From the NCBI RefSeq assembly GCF_902713615.1, contig NC_052168.1:2914001-2978000 (forward strand): a DNA stretch of 64,000 nucleotides, given 5' to 3'. The DNA is from Scyliorhinus canicula. Its lineage: Eukaryota. The translations under genes and the position numbers were made by a program. This document shows, one piece after another, positions 6,941 to 63,082 of the stretch (position 1 is its first letter; the number at the start of each line of letters is the position of its first letter). Under the pieces are notes generated by a model, which searched no databases, was not told where the DNA came from, and saw nothing but the letters and a program-made list of their open reading frames with translations.

Positions 6941-6986
6941 GTTGCTGATTGGACAGGAGCAACGTATCAAGATAAGCGATACACCA
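6941..6986 (+). CDS. EIF3D: EIF3D coding exon 2 (46 nt)
   Basis: VADWTGATYQDKRYT; tttgcag|...|gtaagt; phase consistent with neighbours. Confidence 0.97.
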
Positions 6987-7894: not shown

Positions 7895-8031
7895 ATAAAT
7901 ACTCCTCCCAGTTCGGAGGCGGCAGCCAGTACGCTTACTTCCACGAGGAGGATGAGACCAGCTTCCAGCTCGTCGATACCGCCCGCACGCAGAAGACCGC
8001 GTACCAGAGGAACCGCATGAGATTCGCTCAG
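7895..8031 (+). CDS. EIF3D: EIF3D coding exon 3
   Basis: [46 protein letters not shown]; ccgcag|...|gtaagc. Confidence 0.97.
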
Positions 8032-9035: not shown

Positions 9036-9124
9036 CAAAGAAACATGCGACGGGAGAAGGATCGTCGTCAGCTGCTGCAGTTTAACATGCAGACGCTGCC
9101 GAAAAGTGCCAAGCAGAAGGAAAG
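9036..9124 (+). CDS. EIF3D: EIF3D coding exon 4
   Basis: QRNMRREKDRRQLLQFNMQTLPKSAKQKER; tcgcag|...|gtgagt. Confidence 0.95.
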
Positions 9125-10935: not shown

Positions 10936-11141
10936 ATGCTGGGTCCTCGAGAGCGACAAACAGCATTGGGCCTTTGATCGTGAGGCTTTTTTTGGGTTGA
11001 ATAAGCCAGCTGATGCGTGGACACGAAGCTACCCAGGCAGCTCAGCCACCGGTCGGCATTTTCTTTTATCGGGAATTTTAATGGCGCACTTTGGGATGTT
11101 CCTTTCCACCTGAGCAAGTTCTGTTCCTCATCTCATTCCAG

Positions 11142-11214
11142 GGATCGCTTGCGTCTGCAGAAGAAATTTCAGAAGCAGTTTGGCGTGCGGCAGAAATGGG
11201 ACCAGAAGAATCAG
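11142..11214 (+). CDS. EIF3D: EIF3D coding exon 5
   Basis: DRLRLQKKFQKQFGVRQKWDQKNQ; ttccag|...|gtcaga. Confidence 0.96.
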
Positions 11215-11227
11215 GTCAGACTCTTAA

Positions 11228-11408
11228 TGAAATGAAAATCGCTTATTGTCACAAGTAGGCTTCAATGAAGTTACCGTGAAAAGCCCCTAGTCGCCACATT
11301 CTGGCGCCTGTTCAGGGAGGCTGGTACGGGAATTGAACCGTGCTGCTGGCCTGCCTTAGTCTGCTTTAAAAGCCAGCGATTTAGCCCAGTGTGCTAAACC
11401 AGCCCCAT
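11228..11408 (-). mobile_element. Short tRNA-derived SINE lacking the V-domain, with the same L2-like tail
   Basis: Head GGGGCTGGTTTAGCACACTGGGCTAAA...GGTTCAATTCCCGTACC; related copy at ~28330-28495 (+). Confidence 0.8.
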
Positions 11409-11880
11409 AAAACATTAGCAGAACGAGTCCCCGTCTGTGTGAAATACACAAAGTGTCTGAGTATGGGGTCACTGAGGGAGAGGGGCGCGCCGCACACTTC
11501 ACACACCAGCTGCTTGTGTGTGGCTGGTATCCGGCTTTTATCAAGTTGTGGCAGCCATCGCCACCATTATTATTCTGTGGCTCTGGATGTTTTTTGTCTG
11601 ACAACAAAATGTAAGACACCTCCAGAATGTTTAAGTACAAGTTGTTCTAAGACATGTCTTCAGCACGGGAATTATGGGAAAGTATCCACAGAAGACGGAT
11701 TTCCAATAGCATCCTGCTGAAATATTTTCCTGATGTGTTTTATTTTGTTGTGGCAATTAAGTGAGAGATCTCCAGCTGCCTCTGTTTCAATGTTTGATCC
11801 CTCCAAGAGGATCGCACGGGTTCAGTTACAATCCCCCTTTGCTGGGGTTACTAACACATCCCCCTGTTTGTCACGTACAG

Positions 11881-11996
11881 CTGAAGCCGAGAGATTCCTC
11901 TGTTGAAGTGCGGAGTGATTGGGAGGTGAAGGAAGAGATGGACTTTCCTCGGCTGATGAAGATGAGATACATGGAAGTGGCTGATCCCAGCGACAT
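11881..11996 (+). CDS. EIF3D: EIF3D coding exon 6
   Basis: LKPRDSSVEVRSDWEVKEEMDFPRLMKMRYMEVADPSD; tacag|...|gtgagt; branch-like ctaac at 11851. Confidence 0.95.
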
Positions 11997-12228
11997 GTGA
12001 GTGTTTCCCCAATAGATTTCTCCCCTTTCCCCGAGCTCCCCACCCACCCTGCCCAGGCCCAGTCACCGCAGGGTGGGCTGTATCTGCGTGCCGTATTGCC
12101 TCTGCAAACCACCTCTGCAGCTCTGCCTTTTGAGGTCTTGAGGCTCCAAAGGTGCCCTGAAGGAAAAACAACCTGCCTTTGTTTTGGCTGCAATTTCAAA
12201 ATCTCTGCTCTCATACGCACTATAGTGG

Positions 12229-12627
12229 AGTACTGAGGGAGTGCCGCACTGTCAGAGGGTCAGTACTGAGGGAGTGCCGCACTGTCAGAGGGTCAGTACT
12301 GAGGGAGTGCCCCACTGTCAGAGGGTCAGTACTGAAGGAGCGCCGCACTGTCAGAGGGTCAGTACTGAGGGAGTGCTGCACTGTCAGAGGGTCAGTACTG
12401 AGGGAGTGCTGCCCTGTCAGAGGGTCAGTACTGAGGGAGTGCTGCCCTGTCAGAGGGTCAGTACTGAGGGAGTGCTGCACTGTCAGAGGGTCAGTACTGA
12501 GGGAGTGCCGCACTGTCAGAGGGTCAGTACTGAGGGAGTGCCGCACTGTCAGAGGGTCAGTACTGAGGGAGTGCCGCACTGTCAGAGGGTCAGTACTGAG
12601 GGAGTGCTGCACTGTCAGAGGGTCAGT
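12229..12627 (+). repeat. 33-bp minisatellite GAGGGAGTGCCGCACTGTCAGAGGGTCAGTACT, ~12 copies
   Basis: Near-perfect tandem unit; 11-aa periodicity in the ORF track. Confidence 0.97.
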
Positions 12628-13064
12628 GCCGCGCTGCCAGTTTAGCTCAGTTGGCTGGACAGCTGGTTCCTGACGCAGAGCGAGGCCAGCACCGTGGGTT
12701 CAATTCCCGCACCGGCTGAGGTTATTGATGGCGGCTCCACCTTCTCAATCTTGTTCCCTGCCTGAGGTGGTGTGACCCTCGGGTTAAATCACCACCAGTC
12801 AGCTCTCCTCCTCAAAGGGAGAAAAGCAGCCTACGGTTATCTGGGTCTGTGGCGACTTTAACTTGCTGAGGGAGTGCTGCACTGTCACTTCGGATAAGAT
12901 ATTCTACGGTTAAACTTGATTCCTGTCTGCCCCATGCGGTGCACCCTTTGAAGCAGAGTCTCACAATTCTCCCAGGTGTCCAGATATTTTTCCCTTCTCC
13001 CATTCCACTAGAACAGACGAGCTGGTCACTGTCTGATTGCTGTGTTGGGTTCCTGTTCCCTCAG

Positions 13065-13197
13065 AGAGTGCTGTGGTACACTGGAGTACTATGACAAGGC
13101 GTTCGACCGAATAACAACCCGGAACGAGAAATCACTGAGAAGCATCAAGAGGATTTTCCACACTGTGACCACCACTGACGACCCTGTCATCCGTAAG
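13065..13197 (+). CDS. EIF3D: EIF3D coding exon 7
   Basis: [44 protein letters not shown]; ctcag|...|gttagt. Confidence 0.97.
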
Positions 13198-13484
13198 GTT
13201 AGTTCACAGATCAGAGCTCGTTGTAAGAGGTGTTGGGGCAGTAATGCTCGGCCAGTTAATCTTAAACCTCGCACTGATGGATGTTTGCTGGAGCTGAAAC
13301 CCATGAAGGGAGATGGAGCCGAGGTACGTGGTCGGCCCCACAATCTAACTGAAGAGCAGAGAAGGTGCTGAGTGAGTTCCCCCCTGTTCTACCTTGTGCA
13401 GTGTGGCCAGTCTTCATTTGAGTGTCGTTTTTTTGCTGTGCAAGCTCCAGTCAGCATTACTGCGTGACAGGATGGTCATCCTTC

Positions 13485-15190
13485 TAGTAACGTAGAAAAT
13501 GGGAGCAGGACGAGGCCTTTCTGTCTTTCGAGCCTGTTCAGCCGTTCATTATCATCATGGCTGATCATCTAACTCAATAGCCAAATCCCGCCTTCCCCCT
13601 CCATATCCTTTGATCCCCTTTGGGCAGCACAGTAGCACAAGTGGCTAGCACTCTGGCTTCACAGTGCCAGGGTCCCAGGTTCGATTCTCGGCTTGGGTCA
13701 TTGTTTGTGCGGAGTCTGCACGCTCTCCCCGTATCTGCGTGGGTTTCCTCCGGGTGCTCCGGTTTCCTCCCACGGTCCAAAGAAGTGCAGGTTAGGTAGA
13801 TTGGCCATGATAAATTGCCCTTAGTGACCAAAACCGTTAGGAGGGTTTATCGGGTTACGGGGATAGGGTGGCAGTGAGGGCTTAAGTGGGTTGGTGCAGA
13901 CTCGATGGGCTGAATGGCCTCCTTCTGCACGGTATGTTCTCTGTTTGCCCTAAGTGCTGTATCTCACTGCTTCTTGAAAACATACAATGTTTTGGACTCA
14001 ACTATTTCCTGTGGTAACGAATTTCACCAGCTCACCACTCTCTGGGTGAAGAAATTTCTCCTCGTCTCTGTCCTAAATGGTCTACCCCATATCCTCAGAC
14101 TGTGACCCCTGGTTCTGGACGCCCCCGCCATCGGGAACATCCTTCCAGCATCTACCCTGTCCAGTCCGATTAGAATTTTCTAGGTTTCTATGAGATTCCC
14201 CCCTCATTCTTCTGAACTCCAGCGAGAACAATCCTAACCGATTCAATCTCTCCTCGTACGTCAGTCCTGCCATCTCAGGAATCAGTCTGGTAAACCTTGG
14301 TTGCACTCTCTCTAGCGCAGATAAGGAGACCAAAACTGCCCACAATACTCCATGTGTGGCCTCACCAAGGCCCTGTATATTTGCAGCAAGACATCCCTGC
14401 TCCTGTACTCTAATCCTCTCGCTATGAAGGTCAACATACCATTGGCCTTCTTTACCGCCTGCTGTACCTGCATGCTTACCTTCAGTGACTGGTGTACGAG
14501 GACACCCAGGTCTCGTTGCACATTCCCCTCTCCTAATTTATGATCATTCAGATAATCTGCCGCCTTGTTTTTGCTACCAAAGTGGATAACCTCGTATTTA
14601 TCCAAATTATACTGTATCTGCCATTCATTTGCCCACTCGCTCAACTTGTCCAAATCACATTGAAGCATCTCTGCATCCTCCTCACAGCTCACCCTCCCAC
14701 CCAACTTGGTGTCATCTGCAAATTTGGAGATATTTCATTTTGTTCCATCATCTAAATCATTAATATAAATTGTGAATAGCCAGGGTCCCAGCACCGATCC
14801 CTGCGGTACCCCATTAGTCACTGCCTGTCATTTGGAAAAGACCTGTTAATTCCTACTCTTTGTTTCCACTGCCAACCAGTTTTCTATCCATCCCCACACA
14901 CTACCCCTAATCCCATGCGATTTAATTTTACACATTAATCTCTTATGCGGAACTGTGTGAAAAGATTGCTGAAAATCCAAATAAAGCACATTGGCTGGCT
15001 CCCTCTTGTCAACTTTCCGAGTCACATCCTCAAAAAATTCCAATCTATTTGTCAAGCATGATTTCCCTTTCGTAAATCCATGCTGACTCTGTCCGATCCT
15101 GCCTCTGTTTCCCAAGTGCTCTGCTATAAAATCTTTGATTAATGGATTCGAGAATTTTCCCCACTACTGACATCAGGTAGTGCTGGTCTA
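13485..15190 (-). mobile_element. CR1/HER1-like LINE, decayed ORF2 3' half, interrupted by a SINE
   Basis: SQHGFTKGKSCLTN, LQCDLDKLSEWANEWQ, RDLGVLVHQSLK, LVRPHMEYCGQFWSPYLR. Confidence 0.92.
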
Positions 15191-15536
15191 TAATTTATCA
15201 TTTGTCCACTCGGTGTGCATGAAGCTGTGTGCAATGTCCAGAACAGTCAGCCATCTGTTTGCACTGTTGCAGTCTCCGCTGATGGCGTTTCCTTGATAGT
15301 GTTAGGTTGATGTTGCTGCACTTGTCCTCCGGAACCCTGGCTGTCTTGCGTCTCCGTTTATTTGTGCTCTGTCAGAAACTGGAATTAGTGTGCTGGCCAA
15401 AGTCCGAACTCCGTGATCTCCCTCCCTCCCGTAAACGGAGTTTGAGGTTGTTGGCTGTTTCTGTCTAATTGAACGAGAGCTATTCCCTGTGCCGTGGTTT
15501 TGGAGTGAGTGGTTGATTGTCTCCGTGTGTTAACAG

Positions 15537-15684
15537 CTGGCCAAGTCTCAGGGGAATGTGTTTGCAACAGACGCCATCCTGGCCACTCTGATGTGCTGCA
15601 CCAGATCCGTCTATTCCTGGGACATCATCGTGCAACGGGTCGGATCCAAGCTCTTCTTCGACAAACGTGACCACTCGGACTTTG
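15537..15684 (+). CDS. EIF3D: EIF3D coding exon 8
   Basis: [49 protein letters not shown]; aacag|...|gtaagg. Confidence 0.97.
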
Positions 15685-15722
15685 GTAAGGAGAAAATTGC
15701 CAATGCAGGCATTGTGTCAGAT

Positions 15723-16545
15723 AACATAAGAACTAGGAGCAGGAGTAGGCCATCTGGCCCTTCGAGCCTGCTCCGCCATTCAATGGGATCATGGCTGATC
15801 TTTTGTGGATTCAGCTCCACTTTCCGGCCCGAACACCATAACCCTTAATCCCTTTATTCTTCAAAAAACTATCTATCTTTACCTTAAAAACATTTAATGA
15901 AGAAGCCTCAACTGCTTCACTGGGCAAGGAATTCCATAGATTCACAACCCTTTGGGTGAAGAAATTCCTCCTAAACTCAGTCGTAAATTTACTTCCCCTT
16001 ATTTTGAGTCTATGCCCCCTAGTTCTGCTTTCACCCGCCAGTGGAAACAACCTGCCCGCATCTATCCTATCTATTCCCTTCATAATTTTACATGTTTCTA
16101 TAAGATCCCCCCCTCATCCTTCTAAATTCCAACGCGTACAGTCCCAGTCTACTCAACCTCTCCTCATAATCCAACCCCTTCAGCTCTGGGATTAACCTAG
16201 TGAATCTCCTCTGCACACCCTCCAGTGCCAGTACGTCCTTTCTCAAGTATGGAGACCAAAACTGAACACAATACTCCAGGTGTGGCTTCACTAACACCTT
16301 ATACAATTGCAACATAACCTCCCTAGTCTTAAACTCTATTCTTCTAGCAATGAAGGACAAAATTCCATTTGCCTTCTTAATCACCTGTAAGCCAACTTTC
16401 TGTGACTCATGCACTAGCACACCCGGGTCTCTCTGCAGAGCTGCATGTTTTAATATTTAATCATTTAAATAATAATCCCGTTTGCTGTTATTCCTACCAA
16501 AATGGATAACCTCACATTTGTCAACATTGTATTCCATCTGCCATT
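15723..16545 (-). mobile_element. CR1/HER1-like LINE 3' end
   Basis: LVKPHLEYCVQFWSPYLRKD, RTRGHRLK, FRRNFFTQRVVNLWNSLP; tail repeat TTCTTATGTTA. Confidence 0.92.
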
Positions 16546-16687
16546 GCATTTTACCCCTCCCCCTCTGTGCCGTGCACAATAAAATATCCCAGCACTGAGA
16601 ATCTTTTTTTATTGTCCGGCTGATGATTGGGTCTGATGGTCAGAGGGTGCCGCGGCTGCTTGTTAACTTGCTCTTTTTATCATCCAG

Positions 16688-16818
16688 ACCTCCTAACGGT
16701 CAGCGAAACCGCGAACGAGCCCCCACAAGATGAAGGGAATTCTTTCAATTCTCCCCGTAACTTGGCCATGGAGGCCACTTACATCAACCACAACTTTTCT
16801 CAGCAATGCCTGAAGATG
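16688..16818 (+). CDS. EIF3D: EIF3D coding exon 9
   Basis: [44 protein letters not shown]; tccag|...|gtgcga. Confidence 0.97.
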
Positions 16819-17034
16819 GTGCGAAAAGGGACACCAAGCGACGTAAGCAACTGGTCTGTAAACCCTCGAGGTTTAGCTTAAAAGGTGCCAAAGCGGCTGC
16901 GCTCCCATCCACCCCCGCCAAACCCAGTGATAGTTGCCACGCTAAGAGGGAGGAGCCAACTCCGACAACACGATGCACTAGTGGCAATGTCCGCCATGGT
17001 GACATTGGATACCTCCTTCAAAACCTGGAGACAT

Positions 17035-17262
17035 AGGACAGCACGGTGGCGTTGTGGTTAGCACTGCTGCCTCACAGCGCTGAGGTCCCAGGTTCGACCC
17101 CGGCTCTGGGTCACTGTCCGTGTGGAGTTTGCACATTCTCCCCGTGTCTGCGTGGGTTTCGCCCCCACAACCCAAAGATGTGCAGGGTAGGTGGATTGGC
17201 CACACTAAATTGCCCCTTAATTGGAAAAAATGAATTGGGTACTCTAAATTTGTTTTTTAAAA
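17035..17262 (+). mobile_element. Short V-SINE with A/T-rich tail and target-site duplication
   Basis: Internally shortened V-domain (GGGTTTCGCCCCCACAACCCAAAGA) and tail CCCCTTAATTGGAAAAAATGAATTGGGTACTCTAAATTT. Other copies at ~9313-9538, 29417-29652, 42283-42509, 47725-47952 (-) and 30958-31187, 39262-39485, 46481-46705, 54379-54588, 56121-56335 (+). Confidence 0.9.
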
Positions 17263-17559
17263 AGCTGGAGACAGGACGGTACGTGCGACTAAGAAACTTC
17301 CTCCTCAAGAAGGCAGCACAACACTCCCTGCTGGACAGACTTCTGACCAAGGGCGGACTAAGGGACAGTAACTACATCAAATGCAAGGTTTTGTTCCTGT
17401 GTTTCACGGGCTTTTTTTGGGATTAGGCAGTTTCTCCGGTTCGGTCATTTTTGACAAGCGGAGCCTTTCCTGGGTTTGGAAAGGGTGAAATATTATCTGG
17501 CGTTTGGGTCCTTTGGTTATGTGGGTGTTGGAGGGACTCGCTGTCCTCGGGGTGGTCAG

Positions 17560-19612
17560 CACGGCAGTCAGCGCAACATCCCAGTGGCGGTCAGCGCGGA
17601 GTCCCAGTGGCGGTCAGCGCGGAGTCCCAGTGGCGGTCAGCACGGAGTCCCAGTGGCGGTCAGCGCGGAGTCCCAGTGGCGGTCAGCGCGGAGTCCCAGT
17701 GGCGGTCAGCGCGGAGTCCCAGTGGCGGTCAGCGCGGAGTCCCAGTGGCGGTCGGCGCACCGTCCCAGTGGCGGTCGGCGCAGCGTCCCAGTGGCGGTCG
17801 GCGCAGCGTCCCAGTGGCGGTCAGCGCAGCGTCCCAGTGGCGGTCAGCGCAGCGTCCCAGTGGCGGTCAGCGCAGCGTCCCAGTGGCGGTCAGCGCAGCG
17901 TCCCAGTGGCGGTCAGCGCAGCGTCCCAGTGGCGGTCAGCGCAGCGTCCCAGTGGCGGTCAGCGCAGCGTCCCAGTGGCGGTCAGCGCAGCGTCCCAGTG
18001 GCGGTCAGCGCAGCGTCCCAGTGGCGGTCAGCGCAGCGTCCCAGTGGCGGTCAGCGCAGCGTCCCAGTGGCGGTCAGCGCAGCGTCCCAGTGGCGGTCAG
18101 CGCAGCGTCCCAGTGGCGGTCAGCGCAGCGTCCCAGTGGCGGTCAGCGCAGCGTCCCAGTGGCGGTCAGCGCAGCGTCCCAGTGGCGGTCAGCGCAGCGT
18201 CCCAGTGGCGGTCAGCGCAGCGTCCCAGTGGCGGTCAGCGCAGCGTCCCAGTGGCGGTCAGCGCAGCGTCCCAGTGGCGGTCAGCGCAGCGTCCCAGTGG
18301 CGGTCAGCGCAGCGTCCCAGTGGCGGTCAGCGCAGCGTCCCTGCGGCTGTCAGCGCAGCGTCCCTGCGGCAGTCAGCGCAGCGTCCCTGCGGCAGTCAGC
18401 GCACCGTCCCTGCGGCAGTCAGCGCACCGTCCCTGCGGCAGTCAGCGCACCGTCCCTGCGGCTGTCAGCGCACCGTCTCTGTGGCGGTCAGCGCGGCGTC
18501 CCTGCGGCGGTCAGCGCACCGTCTCTGTGGCGGTCAGCGCACCGTCCCTGCGGCGGTCAGCGCGGCGTCCCTGCGGCGGTCAGCGCACCGTCTCTGTGGC
18601 GGTCAGCGCACCGTCCCTGCGGCGGTCAGCGCGGCGTCCCTGCGGCGGTCAGCGCACCGTCCCAGCGGCGGTCAGCGCACCGTCTCTGTGGCGGTCAGCG
18701 CACCGTCCCTGCGGCGGTCAGCGCACCGTCCCTGAGGCGGTCAGCGCGGCGTCCCTGAGGCGGTCAGCGCACCGTCCCTGAGGCGGTCAGCGCGGAGTCC
18801 CAGCGGCGGTCAGCGCACCGTCCCTGAGGCGGTCAGCGCGGCGTCCCTGAGGCGGTCAGCGCGGCGTCCCAGCGGCGGTCAGCGCACCGTCCCTGCGGCG
18901 GTCAGCGCACCGTCCCTGAGGCGGTCAGCGCGGAGTCCCAGCGGCGGTCAGCGCACCGTCCCTGCGGCGGTCAGCGCACCGTCCCTGCGGCGGTCAGCGC
19001 ACCGTCCCTGAGGCGGTCAGCGCGGAGTCCCAGCGGCGGTCAGCGCACCGTCCCTGAGGCGGTCAGCGCGGCGTCCCTGAGGCGGTCAGCGCGGCGTCCC
19101 TGAGGCGGTCAGCGCGGCGTCCCTGAGGCGGTCAGCGCGGCGTCCCTGAGGCGGTCAGCGCGGCGTCCCTGAGGCGGTCAGCGCACCGTCCCTGCGGCGG
19201 TCAGCGCACCGTCCCTGCGGCGGTCAGCGCACCGTCCCTGCGGCGGTCAGCGCACCGTCCCTGCGGCGGTCAGCGCACCGTCCCTGCGGCGGTCAGCGCA
19301 CCGTCCCTGCGGCGGTCAGCGCACCGTCCCTGCGGCGGTCAGCGCAGCGTCCCTGCGGCGGTCAGCGCACCGTCCCTGCGGCGGTCAGCGCACCGTCCCT
19401 GCGGCGGTCAGCGCACCGTCCCTGCGGCGGTCAGCGCACCGTCCCTGCGGCGGTCAGCGCACCGTCCCTGCGGCGGTCAGCGCACCGTCCCTGCGGCGGT
19501 CAGCGTGGCGGTCAGCGCACCGTCCCTGCGGCGGTCAGCGCACCGTCCCTGCGGCGGTCAGCGCGGCGTCCCTGCGGCGGTCAGCGCGGCGTCCCAGTGG
19601 CGGTCAGCGCGC
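17560..19612 (+). repeat. 23-bp GC-rich minisatellite GTCCCAGTGGCGGTCAGCGCAGC, ~89 copies, in an EIF3D intron
   Basis: Direct inspection; variant units occur in blocks. Confidence 0.98.
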
Positions 19613-19707
19613 TGTCTCTTGGGCCCGGGTATTTTTCTTCAGTTATTTTAGCTGCTGCCTTGTCATGTGACCCGGTTTACACTCTCCTTTATCTCTCTCT
19701 CCTCTAG

Positions 19708-19793
19708 GGCATTGAGAAATACAAGTTCCCAAATCCAAACCCTTTTGTGGAGGACGATGTGGACAAGAATGAGGTGGCTTCAGTGGGATACAG
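19708..19793 (+). CDS. EIF3D: EIF3D coding exon 10
   Basis: GIEKYKFPNPNPFVEDDVDKNEVASVGYR; ctctag|...|gtggga. Confidence 0.96.
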
Positions 19794-20269
19794 GTGGGAA
19801 AGGAAGCTGCTCACTCCGAGAGCACGTGAATGGAGTTTGTGTGAACTCACTGGATTTGATCCTCTGATTAATAACAATGTGAAGGATGGTTTGGGCAAGT
19901 GACTTAATGCGATACAAGATGATGCTACCAGCAGCAAATCCATAGAATCCTTACAATGCAGAGGAAGGCCAATCGGCCCATCGAGTCTGCACCGACCCTG
20001 CGAAAGAGCATCCTACCTAGGCACACTCCCCCGCCCTATCCCTGTAACCCCACGCAGACACGGGAGAATGTGCAAACTCCACGCGGACAGTGACCCGGGG
20101 CCAGGATCGAACCTGGGTCCTTGGCGCTGTGAGGCAGCAGTGCTAACCACTGTGCCACCGTGCTGCCCCATAGGACTTTCGAAATGGAAAGAAAAGTACA
20201 GGGGGTGCCTGTAGAGAGACTTTCGGGTTCAGGTTCAAAGATTTTTAAAATGCCAGGAACAAATGTAGA

Positions 20270-20885
20270 AAGTAATCAAAAACGCTAATGGCTTTTATAT
20301 CGAGAGCATTGGAATATAAAGACACGGGTGATGCTGCAACTTTACAAAACCCTGGTTAGACTCCACTTGGAGTCACTGGGAGCAGTTCTGGGCGCCGCAC
20401 CTTAGGAAGGATATTTTGGCCTTGGAGGGAGTGCAAGGCAGGTTTACAAGAATGATACCTGGACTAATGGGGTTGTTACAAAGAGAGATTACACAAATTA
20501 GGCCTGTTTTCGCTAGAATTTAGAAAGTTACGGTGATCTGATCGAAGTATTCAAGATATTAACAGGGAAAGACAGGGTGGATAAAGATAAACTATTTCCA
20601 CTGGGTGGAGATTCTAAAACTCGGGGACAGAGTCTAAAAATTAGGACCAGTCCGTTCAGGGGAGATGTTGGGAAGAACTTCTTCACTCAAAGGGTGGTAG
20701 AGGTTTGGAATTCTCTCCCACACACGGCAGCTGAAGCTGGAACAGTTGCTCATTTTCAATCTGAGATTTTTGTTAAGCGAAGATATTAAGGGATATGGGC
20801 CAACGGCAGGTCTATGGAGTTGGGTCACAGATCAGCCACAATCTCATTGAATGGCGAGACGGGCTCGAGGGGCTGTTCCTATGAG
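20270..20885 (+). mobile_element. CR1-like LINE 3' fragment
   Basis: KTRGQSLKIR..FRGDVGKNFFTQRVVEVWNSLP. Further decayed CR1 pieces at ~5960-6560, 7020-7305, 24300-25225, 33390-33960 and 50860-52860. Confidence 0.85.
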
Positions 20886-21454
20886 ACACCTGTGTGCAGC
20901 AATGGGTGCTGAGGTCCTGAGTAGGGACAGCATCATGTGACGATAAGGACTGGTGCCTTGGATCAAACGGCTCTGAGACTCACGATGGAATCCACCACCT
21001 GCCGGCAGTCCCACAATGTTTTTAAGATATTCATTCTCGAGATGTGGGCGTCGCTGGCTCGACCAGCATTTATTACACCTCCCTGGTTGCCCTAAGCTGC
21101 GGCTATTTCAGGGGACAGTTAAGATTCGGTCACGCTGGTGTGGACCCAGCATCACTCTTGGGCCCATACTGGGTAAAGGAAGGCAACTTCCCTTACCGCC
21201 ATTTTCTTAATGATCATGGACACTTTACTAATCCCAGCCTTGTATTTCCCCATTTTGAGTTCACATACCCCGCAGAGATGGCGGGATTTAAACTCTTGCT
21301 TTCTGATCTATTTGTTCTGTATCCTGACCACACCTTTGGTGTGGTCGTTATAATCCCACTGACTACGTTGATTAAATCTCAAGTGGCTGATGTCCTTTTG
21401 ACTGTTGCAGCGTGTCTCCGCCTCACTCAGTTCCCTCTGAATCGCTTCCTGCAG

Positions 21455-21584
21455 GTATCGGAGGTGGAAGCTGGGAGAGGACATCGACCTGATTGTGCGA
21501 TGTGAGCATGATGGAGTCATGACGGGTGCCAACGGCGAAGTGTCTTTCATCAATGTCAAAACTCTGAACGAGTGGGACTCACGG
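21455..21584 (+). CDS. EIF3D: EIF3D coding exon 11
   Basis: YRRWKLGEDIDLIVRCEHDGVMTGANGEVSFINVKTLNEWDSR; ctgcag|...|gtaggg. Confidence 0.97.
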
Positions 21585-21651
21585 GTAGGGACCAAGATCT
21601 CACACGGTACTGCAATCTCCGAGTGATTGCCGTAAAAGCTGCTGTCACCAA

Positions 21652-22320
21652 AGAGTGTCAGTATTTACAGGGAGTCCCCGGGGAGTGTGTCAGTGTTTAC
21701 AGGGGGTCCCCGGGGAGTGTGTCAGTATTTACAGGGGGTCCCGGGGAGTGTGTCAGTATTTACAGGGGGTCCCCGGGGAGTGTGTCAGTATTTACAGGGG
21801 GTCCCGGGGAGTGTGTCAGTATTTACAGGGGGTCTCCGAGGAGTGTGTCAGTATTTACAGGTGGTCCCCGGAGAGTGTGTCAGTATTTACAGGGGGTCCC
21901 CGGAGAGTGTGTCAGTATTTACAGGGGGTCCCCGGAGAATGTGTCAGTATTTACAGGGGGTCCCCGGGGAGTGTGTCAGTATTTACAGGGGTTTGCCGGG
22001 GAGTGTGTCAGTATATACAGGGGGTCCCTGGGGAGTATGTCAGTATATACAGGGGGTTCCCCGGGGATGGTGTGTCAGTATTTACAGCGGACCCCCCGGG
22101 GATGGTGTGTCAGTATTTACAGGGGGGGGGGGGTCCCCGGGGATGGTGTGTCAGTATTTACAGGGGGTCCCCGGGGAGTGTGTCAGTATTTACAGGGAGT
22201 CCCCGGGGAGTGTGTCAGTATTTACAGCAGGTCTCCCGGGGTTGGTGTGTCAGTATTTACAGGGGATCTCTGAGGAGTGTGTCAGTATTTACAGGGGGTC
22301 CCTGGGGAGTGAGTCAGAAT
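21652..22320 (+). repeat. 31-34 bp minisatellite GAGTGTGTCAGTATTTACAGGGGGTCCCCGGG, ~21 copies
   Basis: Direct inspection. Confidence 0.95.
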
Positions 22321-22558
22321 TATCAGGGGGCCCGGCTTGAATGGTTGGTGAGTGAGCTCTTGGCTGGGTAATCCAGCAGTTTCCATGTTTGGATCATTTG
22401 TTAAGTGTTTGTAAGAACATGTCTGGCCTCTTCGAGTCGGTTGTGGAGTTGATGTTAATAGTAAGGTCGGGGGCTCCTGGTGTATTGCTGCGAGCTGTAG
22501 TCTATCTGGGGAGCTGCAGACTATCTGGGGGACATTGTATTTCTGTTTCCCTGTGCAG

Positions 22559-22701
22559 TACTGTAATGGGGTGGACTGGCGGCAGAAACTGGATTCACAG
22601 AGGGGGGCAGTCCTTGCCACGGAGTTGAAGAATAACAGCTACAAGCTCGCTCGATGGACCTGCTGTGCATTGCTGGCTGGAACGGAGTATCTGAAACTCG
22701 G
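22559..22701 (+). CDS. EIF3D: EIF3D coding exon 12
   Basis: [48 protein letters not shown]; gtgcag|...|gtaagg. Confidence 0.97.
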
Positions 22702-22947
22702 GTAAGGATGCTGGACTTTGGCGCGTGAGATTTGGAAATTTCGAACAGTTTTTTTTTTTAAAGTTCTGAATGTAGATGGATTTTGGTCCACGAGTTTCAA
22801 TTAATTGTGTTTAATCCCAAACTTCATGTCTGAGATATGGTTCCTCTTTGCTGCAAATATTCTTCTCAGCCGCGGCTAAGTCTAAGATATTGGGTTCAAG
22901 CCCCATCCAGGGCCAGAACCACAGACTGTCAGACCCAGTGCATTATG

Positions 22948-23264
22948 GAGGGCTCGCTGCACTGTCAGAGGGTCAGTACTGAGGGAGTGCCGCACTGTCA
23001 GAGGGTCAGTACTGAGGGCTCGCTGCACTGTCAGAGGGTCAGTACTGAGGGAGTGCTGCACTGTCAGAGGGTCAGTACTGAGGGAGTGCTGCACTGTCAG
23101 AGGGTCAGTACTGAGGGAGTGCCGCACTGTCAGAGGGTCAGTACTGAGGGAGTGCTGCACTGTCAGAGGGTCAGTGCTGAGGGAGTGCCGCACTGTCAGA
23201 GGGTCAGTACTGAGGGAGTGCTGCACTGTCAGAGGGTCAGTACTGAGGGAGTGCCGCACTGTCA
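22948..23264 (+). repeat. Same 33-bp minisatellite, ~9.5 copies, inside a Deu-domain-like SINE remnant
   Basis: Tandem unit as at 12229, flanked by TGGGTTCAAGCCCCA and GGGGAGTTCCTGCTGATGTCCTGGGGTCAATATT. Confidence 0.95.
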
Positions 23265-23559
23265 GTTTTTCAGGTAGATGCAAAAGACCCGGTTGTTATC
23301 GGAGGAAGATTTGGGGAGTTCCTGCTGATGTCCTGGGGTCAATATTTAGATTTTTGTATGAAACAAAATTTCAGTATCTTGTTCCCATCTGCAGCCGTCG
23401 CTTCCTCCTACAATTCACAAACTCTTAAAATACCAGCAATAGTTGGGCTGTAGATGCCGACTCTGACCTGTCCTTATTCGGTCAGTGCAGTGTGGATCAC
23501 AACGGTGAATGTGTGACTGTTGGCTAGTGGATCCGTGCTCTCACTCCCTCTCTCTGTTT

Positions 23560-23659
23560 TTTTTTAATAAACAATTTTATTGAGGTAGTTTTTGGCTTTA
23601 TAAACAGTTACAGACATCATCAGAAAGGAAGCAAAAAAGGCAAAAATGTGCAAACATCT
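23560..23659 (-). mobile_element. 100-nt antisense retroposed insert (L1-type 3' end) with 16-bp TSD in the polypyrimidine tract of an EIF3D acceptor
   Basis: TSD CTCCCTCTCTCTGTTT at 23544-23559 and 23660-23675; minus strand ends AATAAAATTGTTTATT(A)n. Confidence 0.88.
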
Positions 23660-23679
23660 CTCCCTCTCTCTGTTTGAAG

Positions 23680-23872
23680 GTACGTTTCCCGATTCCACAT
23701 CAAGGACTCCTCTCGTCACGTGGTCCTGGGCACCCAACAGTTCAAGCCCAACGAGTTTGCCAGTCAGATTAACCTGAGTATGGAGAACGCCTGGGGAATC
23801 CTGCGCTGTGTCATTGACATCTGCATGAAGTTGGAGGAGGGCAAATACCTTATCCTGAAAGACCCTAACAAG
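23680..23872 (+). CDS. EIF3D: EIF3D coding exon 13
   Basis: [64 protein letters not shown]; ttgaag|...|gtgagc. Confidence 0.97.
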
Positions 23873-25495
23873 GTGAGCTCTGCTGGGGTGGGTGTGTGTG
23901 TGTGAGTGGCTCCACCTCTGGGTCATACAGGAGGGACCAGTTGCTACAGCATCTGGTTTATGCTGTGCACCGACCGGTTTAAGGAGAAGCTGCATGAAAG
24001 AGGGATAGACGGTTAGGCGCGAGGCAGTAGAGTGGGTCATGAGGCTCGTGGAGAATAAACATTGACCCATTGGCTCGAATGGCCTGTGACGTGAATTCTG
24101 TGCCCTGTATTCGCCGGGGAACTGCGCGCAGGGGTTTTTCACTGTGGGTCCAATTTCAGTAGGAAGCTGAATGATCCGGCACATTGGATGTAGTTATCTG
24201 CATCCTCTTGTCAGTTTTAATTCTGCGCAGCCTTGCACTCTGTAACAATTGGAACGCTGAGCTGTGAATTCAGAGGCCGAAAAAGCATCTGCAGTTCATG
24301 CTTGCCTTCATCGGACGGGGCATTGAGTTTAAAAATTAGCAAGTCATGTTGCAGCTTTATAGAATATAGTGTTCAATTCTGGTCGCCACACTACCAGGAG
24401 GATGTGGAGGCTTTGGAGAGGGTGCAGTAAAGATTTACCAAGATGTTGCCTGGTTATGGAGGGCATTAGCTATGAGGAGAGGTTGAATAAACTCGCAACG
24501 ATGTAGGTTGAGGGGCGACCTGATAGAGGTCTACAAGATTGAGGGGTATGGACAGAGTGCATAATCAGAAGTTTTTTCCCAGGGTGGAAGAATCAATTAC
24601 TAGGGGGCGTAGGTTTACGGTACGAGGGGCAAGGTTTACAGGGGATGTACGAGGGAAGTTTTCTTTTACACAGAGGGTAGTGGGAGCCTGGAACTCGTGG
24701 CCGGGGGAGGTGGTAGAAGCAGATGCGATAGGGCAGCACGGTAACACAGTGGTTAGTACCGTTGCTTCACAGCAGCAGGGTCCTAGGTTCGATTCCCGGC
24801 TTGGGTCACTGTCTGTGCGGAGTCTGCATGTTCTCCCCGTGTCTGCGTGGGTTTCCTCCGGGTGCTCCGGTTTCCTCCCACAGTCCAAAGATGTGCGGGT
24901 TAGGTGGATTGGCCGTGATAAATTGCCCTTGGATTAGGTGGGGTTGCTGGGTTACAGGGATAGGGTGGAAGTGTGGGCTTAAGCAGGGTGCTCTTTCTGA
25001 GGGCTGGTGCAGACTCGATGGGCTGAATGGCCTCCTTCTGCACTGTTTTGTTTTTTAAAATTCTAGTGACTTTTAAGGGGTGTCTTGACAAATACATGAA
25101 TAGGGTGGGAATAGAGGGATAGGAACTCTGGAAGGGTAGGGGGTTTGAGTGCAAGCGGGCAGCATGGTCCATGCAGGCTTGAAGGGCCGTAGTGCCTGTT
25201 ACTGTGCTGTAACTTTCTTGTTTATATGACTGAGGCAGGAATGAATGGCGGTGGGTGGGGGGTTGGGTGGGGTGGGGGGATGTGCCTGGTTTATTTTTTG
25301 GCAGTAGGCTGTGATCGTTGGGAGTGGTGGTGAGGGTTCCCACCTGTGGCCATGGTGTGTGCAGGCGAGGTGAGAGCCACTGTGTTGAGTGGAAGCTCCC
25401 TCCTGGTGCTGTGAACACTGGCTGGTGTGTTGATCTGTTTGAGCTGTGCTGGTTTGCTGCTGAACCCGTCCTTCCGTCTCTCTCCCTGTCCGCAG

Positions 25496-29994: not shown

Positions 29995-30415
29995 AACGGC
30001 CAGGCCCAGCATTTATTGTCCATCCCTAATTGCCCTTGAGAAGGTGGTGGTGAGCCGCCGCCTTGAACCAGCTGCAGTCCATGTGGTGTAGGTACACCCA
30101 CAGTGCTGTTAGGGAGGGAGTTCCGGGATTTGGACCCAGCGACAGTGAAGGAACGGCCAATATATTTCCAAGTCAGGGTGGTGAGTGACTTGGAGGGGAA
30201 CCTCCAGGTGGTGGGGTTCCCAGGTATCTGCTGCTCTTGTCCTTCTAGAAGGTAGAGGTCGTGGGTTTGGAAGGTGCTGACTAAGGAGCCTTGGTGAGTT
30301 GCTGCAGTGCTTCTTGTAGATGGTACACACGGCTGCCACTGTGCGTCGGTGGTGGAGGGAGTGAATGTTTAAGTTGGTGGGTGGGGTGATGATCAAGTGG
30401 ACTGCATTGACCTGG
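29995..30415 (-). mobile_element. Non-LTR retrotransposon (CR1/L2 group) 3' fragment
   Basis: SLHHRRTVAAVCTIYK.HCSNSPRLL.QHLPNPRPLPSRRTRAA; a related decayed piece lies at ~27940-28225 (+). Confidence 0.7.
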
Positions 30416-31363
30416 ATAACTTTAAAGCTATTAAAAGTGATGTTATTGGGAACTCATAGTCTGAGCTTAGTACTGGAAGCATTAGAAATATTAATAATCT
30501 TTATTAGTGTCTCAAGTAGCCTTACATTAACACTGCAATGACGTCACTGTGAAAATCCCCTTGTCACCACACTCTGGCGCCTGTTCGGGTACACAGAGGG
30601 AGAATTCAGAAAGTCCAATTCACCTAACAAGCACGTCTTTCGGGAGGAAACCCACACAGACACGGGGAGAACGTGCAGACTCCACACAGACAAGTCACCC
30701 AAGCCGGGAATCAAACCCGGGTCCCTGGCGCTGTGAAGCAACAGTGTTAACCCATTGTGCTACCGTGACGCCCACAGGTAGAATCAACAGGTGAAATGCA
30801 TGCCTGTTCAGAGACTGGAGGCAAAAACTGTGGAACCTTCCAAGGAACAGTTGTTGGGGCAGAGAGAGGGTGGTGGGGACTGTAAACTGCGTGTGGATGA
30901 GCTGTGATGTTTTAATCGCTCTGTGTCCCCGGCTCACTCGTATCATTGTTTCACAGAGGGCGGCATGTGGCGCAATGGTTAGCACTGGGATTGTGGAGCT
31001 GAGGACCCGGGTTCGAATCCCGGCCCTGGGTCACTGTCCGTGTGGAGTTTGCACATTCTCCCCCTGTCTGCGTGGGTCTCACCCCCACAACCTAAAGATG
31101 TGCAGGGTAGGTGGATTGGCCGCACTAAATTGCCCCTTAATTGGGAAAAAAATGAATTGGGTGCTCTAAATTTATTTATTTTTTAAAATCATTGTTTCAC
31201 AGATGTTTTGAGGTTTTGTCCCCACTGTCAATAAATTCACATCAACCCGAGTCTAAACAATATATAAGACATTGAAGAGCGAATATTCTGTTTCCCTCTC
31301 TAACCTGCCCAACTGGAGAAGCTGCTTACAGGCTGCTGCAGACGCCAGAGCTCAGTACAGCAA

Positions 31364-31389
31364 CGTCACTGTGAGGAGGGAGATATAAA
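31364..31389 (+). promoter_or_regulatory. Core promoter of the NPB/W-like gene: CRE half-site CGTCA (31364-31368) and TATAAA (31384-31389)
   Basis: Motifs seen directly; the TATA box begins 56 nt upstream of the ATG at 31440. Confidence 0.7.
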
Positions 31390-31439
31390 GAGCTCCTGCC
31401 TGTCGGACTGTGAGAGACACAACTTGCCACTGCTGCGGG

Positions 31440-31712
31440 ATGGCTCACCTCGGCCTGCCAATGATCATTGGGGTGACTGTGATTTTCTACCTTCTGTCCA
31501 ACACGCCAGCCTGCGGCTGGTACAGGCAGGCATCCAGCCCTCGTTATTACTCAGTTGGGCGAGCATCTGGGCTACTGCAGGGCATCCGCCGGTCTGCATA
31601 CGTCCGGCGAGGGGGCGTCAAAGAGGGCAGCACCCGAAACCCAGCAAAGCTTGGAGACTTCTTGGCAGAGGCTTGGAAGCGCCCGCTGATTGCGGAATGG
31701 GACTCTGCGACG
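31440..31712 (+). CDS. Neuropeptide B/W-family precursor, coding exon 1 (signal peptide + mature peptide)
   Basis: [26 protein letters not shown]|[31 protein letters not shown]: a hydrophobic signal peptide, then the WY..Y.VGRA.GLL.G.RRS.Y motif of NPB/NPW with two dibasic sites. Phase-0 donor GTGAGA at 31713. Confidence 0.95.
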
Positions 31713-32191
31713 GTGAGATTTCCCTCTCTTGCCTGCCCAGGTTAATAATGCCTGGCACAGTAACACCGACAGTCCCAGGTATTGAGTAGCACAGAGAGTC
31801 CCAGGGACTGGAATGTGTGGGTTCTGCTGATTCGGGGCAGTAGCCGCTGTTCACTGTTACTGCCTCCAGCATCCCGGGATTAGTGAAGGAGGATAGATCC
31901 TGCCCACTGTCAGAATAGAATGTGTGCATCTTTGCACGAGAGTTTGCACTTTTTTGCCTGTGCGTGTCTGCATGAGTGTGTGCACAAGAATCCGTGTATG
32001 CATGATTATCCCTAGGAGCAAATCAAACTGCCCCATGTTCAGGGGAGTGAAGGCAGATTGCAGGGGGAAGTAGGGGCACTGGTTGTGAATGAGTTAACTC
32101 CGTGAGGATAATGTTAACTCCCGGTTTGTGTATCCTAGATCTCGAGAGTGAGCACTTATGTATTTTTTAATAAGAGAACGTTTTATTGTAG

Positions 32192-32323
32192 ATGTGTGTG
32201 AAGGATGTCACTCCCCAGTTAAGCAGCTGTGCAGCCATCACTGAAGACCCATTGATCTTCAACTGTAAGGCCAATGTCCGCCTGACCGTGGATGTCAGTG
32301 GCTGCAACCCCATGGACCCATGA
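32192..32323 (+). CDS. Neuropeptide B/W-family precursor, coding exon 2 (4-Cys C-terminal domain)
   Basis: ttgtag|MCVKDVTPQLSSCAAITEDPLIFNCKANVRLTVDVSGCNPMDP*, resembling the NPB C-terminus (CV.DV.PNL..C...CKANV.L....C). In phase with exon 1; precursor is 134 aa. Missed by the ORF track (<60 aa). Confidence 0.93.
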   Translation: MCVKDVTPQLSSCAAITEDPLIFNCKANVRLTVDVSGCNPMDP

Positions 32324-32495
32324 GCAGACGAGGGGAAGGATTCGGAAATGGAGGTGGAAGAACAGAACAAGATGCAAAGAGCATGAAAAATGCCAACCTG
32401 TAAACCACTGTCACGCAAATCCCCAAAACAAGTCTGCATGTCTGATGTGAAATTTGTAATTAATTGTGACATATAATAGTGGAACTTCCACCTGC

Positions 32496-32536
32496 ATTAA
32501 AAGGGAATATTGAATATTCAGTTTATGTGAAATAAA
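32496..32536 (+). terminator. Polyadenylation signals of the NPB/W-like gene (ATTAAA 32496, AATAAA 32531)
   Basis: Hexamers ~170-210 nt after the stop codon in an AT-rich 3'UTR. Confidence 0.7.
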
Positions 32537-32613
32537 ATTAAATGTCAAATAAGATTGACTGTAAAACAGTGACTGATAAATCCAACGGGGAATTCAGGAG
32601 AAACTTCTTCACC

Positions 32614-33212
32614 CAGAGAGTGGGGGAGAATGTGGGACTCGCTCCCACAGGGAGTGGGGAGAATGTGGGACTCGCTCCCACAGGGAGTGGGGAGAATGTG
32701 GAACTTGCTCCCACAGGGAGTGGGGAGAATGTGGAACTTGCTCCCACAGGGAGTGGGGGGAATGTGGGACTCGCTTCCACAGGAGTGTAGAGAATGGGGG
32801 ACTCGATCCCACAGGGAGTGGGGAGAATGGGGGACTCGATCCCACAGGGAGTGGGGAGAATGTGGGACTCGCTCCCACGGTGAGTGGGGAGAATGTGGGA
32901 CTCGCTCCCACGGAGAGTGGGGAGAATGGGGGACTCGCTCCCACAGGGAGTGGGGAGAATGTGGGATCGCTCCCACAGGGAGTGGGGAGAATGTGGAACT
33001 GGCTCCCACGGAGAGTGGGGAGAATGTGGCATCGCTCCCACAGGGAGTGGGGAGAATGTGGAACTCGCTCCCACGGGGAGCGGGGAGAATGTGGGATCGC
33101 TCCCACAGGGAGTGGGGAGAATGTGGAACTCGCTCCCACGGGGAGCGGGGAGAATGTGGGATCGCTCCCACAGGGAGTGGGGAGAATGTGGAACTAACTC
33201 CCACAGGCAGTG
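32614..33212 (+). repeat. 33-bp G-rich minisatellite CAGGGAGTGGGGAGAATGTGGGACTCGCTCCCA, ~18 copies, inside a CR1 3' fragment
   Basis: Preceded by CR1-type FRRNFFTQRV coding sequence and followed by a CR1 tail (GATGGGCCAAATGGCCT at ~33347). Confidence 0.93.
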
Positions 33213-36200
33213 GGCGAGGTGAATCATACAGAGACACTGAGAAGCTGGAGAAACACGAGTGAGAGAGGAACCAAGAATATATTGATTGGGCAAGATGACA
33301 AATGGTGGGACGAGATTGGTGTGGAGCATAAACACTCACAGATTTGATGGGCCAAATGGCCTTTTTCAGTTCCATAAACTCAATGTAGCTAAATGAAATT
33401 TAATACAGAGGAAACATTAAGTCAATAAATTTGGTTGGATGACAAGGAGAGACAACATAAAATAAAAAGGGTCCAATTCTTCAGGGGGACCTGAGGGTAT
33501 ATCTGCAGAAGTCATTGAAGGTGGCAGACAGATTGAGAGAGTGGTTAATAAAACATCCAGTATTCTAGATTTTATTAATAGGGACGTGGAGTACAAAAGC
33601 AAGGAAGTTCTGATAAACCTCCATAAAACCCTGGGTTGGTGTCAACTGGTGTCCAGTTGTGGGCCCGCACTTTCGGAAGGATGTGAAGGTGTTCAAGGAG
33701 ATGGGGTGGACAGATCGAGAACGGGAGGCCGCAGATTTAAGATGATTGACAAAAGTTGTGCGGCAAGGTGGTTGGGGCCTGGAATGTGCGAGGAAGGCAG
33801 CTTCACTCGAAGCTTTCAAAAGGAATTTGGTGATAAACTGAAGCAAAAAGACTCACGCAGGGGGTGGGGGGGTTGAGTGACGCGAGGTGAGTTACTCTTC
33901 CAGAGGGCTAGCACAGACATAATTGGCTGAATGGCCTCCTTCAGTGCTGCAACCACTCTCCGATTCTCTGATGGCGTCACGTTTGCAGAAGATATCAGAT
34001 AATTCCTCCAACAACAAAAAAACGCCAGGAAATTACAATTCTTCAAGGTTGTTGATTTAATCTGGGCCGAAGACGGAGTTTCCACTGTCAGATTTTGAAG
34101 GGAGAGGTCAGCCAGGGTTGGCTGTGATTGGCCACTCGTGGTCCGATGGGGGCCCAGTGGGTCGCTGGTGAAGAGATTTGCCCCAGCGACAGCCAGCAGG
34201 AAGCAGGAGGAGCTTAGGGTTTTCCCCCAGTGCGTCAATGTGTCTTGTTGGTTCGAGCTGCGGGGGACAATGGCTATAGACAACACCTTGAAACACAATC
34301 TCGCTGGACAGAACAGGCATGGGATGGGACCAAATTGGGGCCTCGACCATCACTATCCATAGCTCCAGACGTACAGCATGAAAATACCACAGTGACTCGG
34401 ACATCCCGGGTGACAGACCACCCCCCAACCCCATCTGTCCCGACCTCTTTACAAAGAACTGCATTTATATATAATAAATAATAATAATCTTTATTAGTGT
34501 CACAAGTAGGCTTACATTAACACTGCAATGAAGTTATTGTGAAAATCCCCCAGTTGCCACACTCCGCCGCCTGTTCGGGTACACTGAGGGATAATTCAGA
34601 ATGTCCAATTCACCTAACAGCACGTCTTTTGGGACTTGTGGGAGGAAACCGGAGCACCCGGAGGGAACCCACGCAGACACGGGGAGAACGTGCAGACAGT
34701 GACCCAAGCCAGGACTGGAACCTGGGACCCTGGCGTCGCGAAGCAATAGTGCTAACCACTGTGCTACCATGCTCAGTTAGGGCAGCACAGTGGTTAGCAC
34801 AATCCCACAATCCAAAGATGTGCGGGTTAGGTGGATTGGCCATGATAAATTGCCCTTAGTGTCCAACAAAAGGTCAGGTGGGGCTTACTGGGTTACAGGG
34901 ATAGGGTGGAGGCGTGGGTTTAAGTAGGGTGCCCTGGGGCAGCACGATGACACAGTGGTTAGCATTGCTGCCTCCGGCGCTGAGGACCTAGGTTCGAATC
35001 CCGGCCCTGGGTCACTGTCCGTGTGGTGTTTGCACATTCTCCCCGTGTGCGTGGGTTTCACCCCAACAACCCAAAGATGTGCAGGGTAGGTGAATTGGCC
35101 GGGCTAAATTGCCCCTTAATTCGAAAAAATAATTGGGTACTATAAATAAATAAATAAATAAATAAATAGGGTGCTCTTTCCAAGAGCCGGTGCAGACTCG
35201 ATGGGTCGAATAGCCTCCTTCTGCACTGTAAATTCTATGATTCAATGATTCTATGCTGCCCCTATAGTGCCTTTCGTAACCTCCGAATTTAAGAAGCTGC
35301 TTAATAGCCAATGAAGTAGTTTAGTGAAGTGTAGTCCCTGTTGCGATGTCGGAAACATGGCTGCCAATTTGTGCACAGCAAGATCCCGCAATCTGATCAC
35401 GAGAAGATCGACTGCTTTCGGGGTGTTGATTGTGGGATGAAATGAAAAATGAAAATGGCTTATTGTCACGAGTAGGCTTCAATGAAGTTTCTGTGAAAAG
35501 CCCCTAGTCGCCACATTCCGGCGCCTGTCCGGGGAGGCTGGTACGGGATGGGTATTGGCCGGGACGCTGAGGTTCCCGACCCTGCTGTCCTGCAAACTGG
35601 TGGCCACCCAACCTGTCACCTCAGCCCAGGCAGGCAGTCCGGGACCGAGTTTCACTTCCCACCTGAAAGACGGCACCTCCAACCCTGCAGCCCCCCCCCC
35701 CCCCCCCCCCCCCCGCCCCAGTGGTGCCCCGGGCGTGTCCGCCCCCGTTATTTTATTTTTTGCCGGGGAACCCCGGTCTTTCCCGGAGCCACCGCTCCAG
35801 GCCTGAGGCACTCCGAGGAGACCGATCACCGAGGGGCAATCATATTCCCGCTCTGATTGGCTGGCGCCCCCACTTCCATTTGCAACCCTGTCACTCTCAA
35901 GCTCTTTGGTGGTTGAAAATGTGTCATCGCCCCAGGGCCGGGCACGCCAGGCGTGGAACAGGTTCTGACTAACACCATCTCTCAACTGCAAAGCTGTGAT
36001 AAAAACAGACAACCCAAATCAAACGGGAACCATTTATTCCAACACAAAGATAATTATATTCACACCAGAACTCAACCAGTCGATACCGCTGAGTTTTTCT
36101 GAAATATTTCCCTTGAACTCTTCTCTGCTTTCCTGAAAACCCAGATGATCACTCCGACAAGGATAACAAGTTATCTCACACAGCAGCTATCTTCACCGTT

Positions 36201-62830: not shown

Positions 62831-63082
<252 letters not shown>

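Follow-up and report, generated by a model that had tools for sequence, protein, structure and literature searches.

The predicted mature peptides of a catshark neuropeptide B-like precursor, an EIF3D-linked member of the NPB/NPW family in sharks and bichirs

Structure of the gene and of its precursor

The window analysed here is a stretch of 64,000 nucleotides of the Scyliorhinus canicula genome (contig NC_052168.1, positions 2,914,001 to 2,978,000 of the forward strand), and all coordinates given below are positions within it. On the + strand of the window lies a gene of two coding exons (31440-31712 and 32192-32323), and the joined product of exon 1 and exon 2 is, by sequence comparison, residue for residue the Scyliorhinus canicula RefSeq protein XP_038639548.1, "neuropeptide B-like". 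The gene is already present under that name in the automatic annotation. Upstream of it a CRE half-site (ACGTCA, 31362-31367) and, ~ 50 bp 5' of the ATG, a TATAAA box (31383-31388, +) can be read directly, and both may belong to the promoter.

Translation of exon 1 gives an open exon of 91 residues (31440-31712, +). It begins with 26 hydrophobic residues ending in Ala-Cys-Gly (31440-31517, +), the predicted signal peptide, and continues with residues 1 to 23 of the core peptide, from Trp1 to Ile23 and with Gln21 included (31518-31586, +), a first Arg-Arg pair at residues 24-25 (CGC CGG, 31587-31592, +), the Ser-Ala-Tyr-Val which makes up the C-terminal tail of the 29-mer (31593-31604, +), a second Arg-Arg pair at residues 30-31 (CGG CGA, 31605-31610, +) and a linker propeptide which occupies the remainder of the exon (31611-31712, +). 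The 23-mer and the 29-mer had previously been delimited by a sequence-only reading of this DNA, and these limits are exact: Trp1 (TGG) starts at 31518 and the two peptides end at 31586 and 31604, each with Arg-Arg behind it. A phase-0 intron follows (31713-32191, +), with a GT donor at 31713 and an AG acceptor before 32192, and exon 2 (32192-32323, +) encodes a 43-residue C-terminal domain with four Cys and the stop codon. An AATAAA signal, which would serve for polyadenylation, is read at 32531-32536 (+). Cichlid npbb has an intron in the corresponding position, and in Callorhinchus NPW one precedes the same domain.

The precursor was compared with a panel of 290 family proteins gathered by two word-indexed searches, one exhaustive profile search and cluster look-ups. 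The Pfam NPBW family (PF15180) matches it with 69 bits against a curated cut-off of 27 (E 4e-19). In the catshark precursor WYR stands directly after ...PACG, and the same layout is found across the panel, where the residues before W-[YF]-[KR] are mostly small at -3 and -1; cleavage is predicted at this junction. The catshark core V13-G-R-A-S/A-G-L-L20, x-G22 matches columns which are invariant or nearly so in the 100 NPB and 23 NPW variants described below, and both basic-pair sites expected of the family, after residues 23 and 29, are present. Given the Pfam NPBW match, the identity of the joined exons with the RefSeq protein and the occurrence of orthologues in six other sharks, a chance open reading frame is excluded. 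Taken together, the stretch very probably (we would put the probability at about 0.85) encodes the mature peptides of the catshark prepro-"neuropeptide B-like", a member of the NPB/NPW family and an EIF3D-linked copy common to sharks and bichirs.

Neighbouring genes and the three loci

The upstream neighbour of the neuropeptide gene is EIF3D (4854-23878, +), located by tblastn with the EIF3D part of Polypterus P0272 through 11 exon matches at 59-98% identity, and in the assembly annotation an eIF-3_zeta gene ends ~ 5.8 kb upstream of the neuropeptide gene. Within an EIF3D intron there is a 2-kb stretch of 71% G+C (18001-20000), and long open reading frames are seen in three frames at 17451-18781. 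No NHERF-type gene is found within 10 kb of the neuropeptide gene, and downstream an early exon of RPL3 (62831-63082, +; Pfam Ribosomal_L3, E 6.8e-31, profile positions 2-66) follows at ~ 30 kb. A crude screen of the interval between 33.4 and 62.5 kb, which combined short motifs with a filter on hydrophobicity and Pfam scans of 20 open reading frames, returned no synaptogyrin-like frame (SYNGR1). The same interval (33400-62500) contains transposon remains, for example an RVT_1 open reading frame at 49019-49417 (-) and long frames at 36-39 kb and 57.8-61.8 kb.

In S. torazame, Hemiscyllium and Cetorhinus the orthologue also has EIF3D directly upstream, and in the 696-aa protein P0272 of the bichir Polypterus senegalus EIF3D runs directly into a homologous neuropeptide precursor. 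P0272, which was deposited as "EIF3D factor, partial", is a read-through fusion, that is, an annotation artefact which documents the adjacency. In the other bichir, Erpetoichthys, P0179 adjoins the adenylosuccinate lyase (ADSL) gene. We take EIF3D, RPL3 and ADSL to lie all on human 22q12-q13, which would make the catshark block human-22q-like.

The loci of NPB and NPW are found elsewhere. In gar and teleosts NPB sits with sstr2, sox9, rnf213, pcyt2 and mafg, and the teleost duplication gave rise to npba and npbb (PMC6684226). The catshark gene, with EIF3D and RPL3 as its neighbours, lies outside this sstr2/sox9/pcyt2/mafg block. The cichlid "NPB-like" protein, the best non-shark match, adjoins a G-alpha gene, which would agree with the place of gnav1 in the block of npbb, and human NPB is, from its presumed map position, in a SOX9/PCYT2/MAFG block. 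As for NPW, the chimaera protein Callorhinchus P0177 has Thr12, Leu21 and an ending of 29 residues plus Arg-Arg-Arg, and its gene lies 4 kb upstream of a PDZ-PDZ-EBP50_C (NHERF-type) gene, just as human NPW presumably adjoins SLC9A3R2 (NHERF2). Given these residues and a NHERF-type neighbour as in human, chimaeras have a true NPW.

The peptide compared with NPB and NPW

Positions 1-31 were counted in 100 distinct NPB-type peptides, in 23 distinct NPW-type peptides and in eight members of the gene's own group, namely seven sharks and the bichir Erpetoichthys. The counts agree with the mixture of NPB and NPW residues proposed by the sequence-only reading. Indeed, two catshark states are NPW-type, Ser7 (19/23 NPW vs 6/100 NPB) and Arg9 (23/23 vs 7/100), while Gln4, Tyr11 (92/100 NPB vs 1/23 NPW) and Ser12 (91/100 vs 0/23) are NPB-type. 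Where the NPB consensus is Gly7 (90/100), Ser9 (64/100), Ser21 (94/100) and Pro27 (77/100), the catshark peptide has Ser7, Arg9, Gln21 and Ala27, and in place of the NPW states His11-Thr12, a hydrophobic residue at 21 and Trp30 it has Tyr11, Ser12, Gln21 and Arg30. Hence the contrasts named earlier (Arg3, Ser7-Pro8-Arg9, Tyr11-Ser12, Gln21, Ala27 and a 29-mer instead of a 30-mer) are all borne out by the position counts. The length of 29 residues had also been read as NPB-like, and it is NPB-type when set against a 30-mer, but chimaera and lungfish NPW likewise end at 29 plus Arg-Arg(-Arg) and the length is thus not diagnostic of NPB. Hagfish homologues display the NPB-type Gly7, Ser9 and Ser21, and the ancestral states are therefore ambiguous.

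What does not hold is the idea that the changes at conserved positions are peculiar to the catshark. Position 21, which is Ser in 94 of the 100 NPB variants and hydrophobic in all 23 NPW variants, is Gln in 7/7 sharks, and the resulting GLLQG is restricted to these seven orthologues, being found in none of the 283 other proteins of the 290-protein panel. Arg3 occurs in 5/8 orthologues, four of the sharks having Arg and three Lys, and it is also present in the bichir, in a clingfish and in several other NPB representatives; the count over the NPB variants is 7/100. Sharks have Ala, Gly, Glu or Gln at position 27, and the RRSAYVRR tail of the catshark is identical to that of cichlid npbb. Furthermore, SPRY itself is seen in only 3/7 sharks (the two Scyliorhinus species and Cetorhinus), positions 7 and 9 being variable in this group. 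Within the gene's own group of orthologues the residues are thus ordinary; by the standard of bony-fish NPB they are not.

On these alignments Gln21 is a fixed shark-wide signature, Arg3 appears to be a recurrent conservative variant within a neutral Lys/Arg alternation and Ala27 part of an unconstrained tail, and the mixed NPB/NPW look seems to be due to segment 5-10, which is variable in this lineage. The mosaic peptide would accordingly be the normal form of the shark/bichir copy and no oddity of one genome.

Constraint among the shark orthologues

Orthologues are present in seven sharks of four orders, the catshark included, and residues 1-23 are the most conserved part of their precursors, with 84% mean pairwise identity and 15/23 invariant columns. 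Identity is 55% in the signal peptide (5/26 invariant columns), 58% in residues 24-31 (2/8), 52% in the linker (5/34) and 58% in the C-terminal domain (10/44), all as means over pairs of the seven sharks. Constraint within the peptide region is thus confined to the 1-23 core, and the tail evolves about as fast as the linker. In the Rhincodon typus orthologue the residue at -1, just before the predicted cleavage of the signal peptide, is Val, and the VGRAS core, invariant elsewhere, contains Pro16; both could be either sequencing or model errors or genuine changes.

The basic pairs are labile as well. Indeed, Arg24-Arg25 is replaced by Trp-Ser in Hemiscyllium, Gln-Arg in Cetorhinus, Arg-His in Rhincodon and Gly-Arg in the bichir, and while all 8 orthologues have Arg30, Heterodontus has Pro in place of Arg31. 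One or the other site is therefore missing in four of the seven shark orthologues and in the bichir, so that some species could make the long form only and one the short form only.

Predicted processing and receptor action

In the catshark, signal peptidase would cut after Gly26 and expose Trp1 as the precursor enters secretion, prohormone convertases would cut at Arg24-Arg25 and at Arg30-Arg31, and carboxypeptidase E would then trim the basic residues. The expected products are a 23-mer (monoisotopic 2614.34) and a 29-mer (3346.74), both non-amidated since neither basic pair has a Gly before it, and both are predicted agonists of Gi-coupled NPBW-type receptors. These processing and receptor steps are proposed by analogy with established prohormone biochemistry and with the mammalian and medaka systems. 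The shark pattern, with constraint on the 1-23 core, has its match in mammals, where purified NPB and NPW start at Trp1, the removal of which abolishes activity, and bovine, rat and mouse NPB are without Arg24-Arg25, NPB29 being the sole form purified (PMC3600615). Trp1 of the catshark peptides may be brominated as in mammalian NPB, of which the des-bromo form is equipotent with the brominated one in vitro (PMC3600615).

Given that the basic pairs are labile in sharks and that the short and long mammalian forms have similar affinity (PMC3600615), a finely tuned ratio of the 23-mer to the 29-mer is unlikely. The tail and the 23/29 cleavage pattern look evolutionarily loose and would be poor candidates for a tuned function. 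Gln21 is the single candidate for a pharmacological difference.

Expression, variants and flanking sequence

Four public runs were compared with the interval 31200-32700 and no spliced joint was seen in them. In the contig runs the depth over the intron and upstream of the gene is similar to that over the exons, and since a second index search located the intron in the same runs, they look like DNA. A single oligo-dT RNA run yielded about three reads confined to exons, a number too small to judge expression. Two coding variants are present in the public contigs, at 31598 and 32251, and both are synonymous.

No Rfam family was found in 30000-33600, and a search of the PDB matched no NPB/NPW chain of at least 20 residues, the single match being due to chance. 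An oestrogen response element (ERE) has been reported for gar and teleost npb promoters (PMC6684226); no ERE-like site, at up to two mismatches, lies within 1 kb upstream of the catshark gene, and matches over the whole window are below chance expectation. Just 5' of the proximal promoter of ~ 250 bp there are two tRNA-derived SINE-like copies (30520-31170). On the 3' side a tandem array with a 33-bp unit (32614-33214; 18 copies, 89% matches) starts ~ 80 bp after the AATAAA. Public reads pile onto this array at thousands-fold depth, which indicates that it is a genome-wide repeat.

Origin of the EIF3D-linked gene

In a maximum-likelihood tree of 40 rows and 132 columns the sharks group together (97/95) and branch outside the NPBs of bony vertebrates (83/89), and NPW makes up a group of its own (92/89). 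The sharks are nearer to NPB than to NPW, and this topology fits either orthology with NPB or a separate paralogue. In the best tree sharks and bichir are joined weakly (52/36), and forcing the bichir among the ray-finned NPBs costs 4.8 log-likelihood units, which is not rejected (p-AU 0.31). The tree was accordingly set aside as proof of a shark and bichir clade. With such weak support, the case for a third paralogue rests on synteny and not on the tree.

On that synteny we lean towards a third paralogue of the NPB/NPW family. Indeed, the position beside EIF3D is common to sharks and bichirs while NPB lies elsewhere in ray-finned and lobe-finned vertebrates, which implies that the ancestor of bony vertebrates already had both loci, the sole alternative being two independent moves to the same spot. 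This shared adjacency, set against gar, teleost and human NPB in the sox9/pcyt2/mafg block, is what speaks against a simpler history, in which the gene would be the shark orthologue of NPB proper, moved beside EIF3D or left there by rearrangement of the NPB locus, with differences that reflect ~ 450 million years of divergence. Such a history would predict what the tree displays, with sharks as sister to bony-vertebrate NPB or in a trichotomy with it, and it is consistent with the presence of the four-Cys domain, Tyr11-Ser12 and the 29-mer, with a bichir gene placed among the ray-finned NPBs (p-AU 0.31) and with the fact that among the best 120 matches no shark shows a second NPB-type protein; we nevertheless regard it as rather unlikely. 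Family searches returned no canonical elasmobranch NPB or NPW, a blank which does not show absence, and Callorhinchus P0177 as query returned Callorhinchus only and no elasmobranch NPW, which again is not evidence of absence. The shark gene could thus be the only NPB-type gene of these animals.

A third paralogue would also fit the wider map. We assume from map positions that the three blocks hold the SOX9/SOX8/SOX10, SSTR2/SSTR5/SSTR3 and SYNGR2/SYNGR3/SYNGR1 triplets, and blocks of this kind are in keeping with a third ohnologue that arose in the two genome duplications of early vertebrates. The fuller proposal, that the EIF3D-RPL3 gene is a third 2R ohnologue kept only in elasmobranchs and bichirs and that the Gln21 peptide is a separate class of ligand with its own receptor preference, is speculative and we hold it to be doubtful. 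A third paralogue in a human-22q-like block of both sharks and bichirs would in itself give the family a third ancient gene for a ligand, one which most bony vertebrates have lost, and would help to explain ligand-receptor co-evolution. The searchable literature describes a family of two ligands, NPB and NPW, with npba and npbb as later NPB duplicates (PMC5207463, PMC6684226), and our literature search found no paper on NPB or NPW of cartilaginous fishes.

The remaining readings concern the unusual residues themselves. Gln21, perhaps together with Arg3 and Ala27, might be adaptive and alter receptor-subtype preference or the 23/29 ratio, as the sequence-only reading had suggested. Position 21 does tell the paralogues apart (94/100 NPB have Ser, 23/23 NPW a hydrophobic residue and 7/7 sharks Gln), and a lineage-specific state fixed within a constrained core is compatible with receptor co-evolution. 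However, closely related species differ in having Arg3 or Lys, the free variation of position 27 and of both basic pairs in sharks speaks against a tuned ratio, and the mammalian short and long forms are of similar affinity (PMC3600615), so that an adaptive origin is to be considered improbable. Far less credible still is that the locus is a decaying or non-functional copy with residues drifting under relaxed constraint. The lack of a spliced transcript in the public runs checked would agree with decay, but the gene retains an intact frame with its splice sites, TATA box and poly(A) signal, 15/23 core positions are invariant in seven sharks of four orders, and both coding variants in the public contigs are synonymous. 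A pseudogene is ruled out by the intact frame and signals together with the conserved core.

Comparison with known systems

The closest likeness of the EIF3D-linked catshark gene can be examined against NPB, NPW and the bichir gene. With NPB (npba and npbb, gar, coelacanth and tetrapod) it shares the Trp-Tyr start after the signal peptide, Gln4, Tyr11-Ser12, the VGRASGLL-x-GI core, the 29-residue long form before Arg-Arg, the four-Cys domain in exon 2 and the division into two coding exons. It differs by its place at EIF3D-RPL3 instead of sstr2/sox9/pcyt2/mafg, by Ser7, Arg9 and Gln21 where NPB has Gly7, Ser9 and Ser21, by the lack of the conserved Pro27, by its position outside the bony-vertebrate NPB group in the tree and by the lack of an ERE-like site within 1 kb upstream.

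With NPW (tetrapods, coelacanth, lungfish and Callorhinchus P0177) it has in common the core, the two basic-pair sites and, as in tetrapod NPW, Ser7-Pro8-Arg9-Tyr10. In contrast to NPW, it is without His11-Thr12, a hydrophobic residue at 21, Trp30 and a NHERF-type neighbour, and it has a full C-terminal four-Cys domain, a pattern found in 149/210 non-NPW-type proteins and in 0/49 NPW-type proteins. In NPB-type proteins this domain is conserved from hagfish to mammals, and a two-Cys remnant of it is kept in coelacanth, chimaera and frog NPW.

Finally, with the bichir "neuropeptide B-like" gene (Erpetoichthys P0179, Polypterus P0272) the catshark gene shares the place directly downstream of EIF3D, Arg3, Gln4, Ser6, the 29-residue long form before Arg-Arg and the four-Cys domain, whereas the bichir gene differs by Gly7, Ser9 and Leu21, by the loss of the first basic pair (Gly-Arg) and by its long branch.
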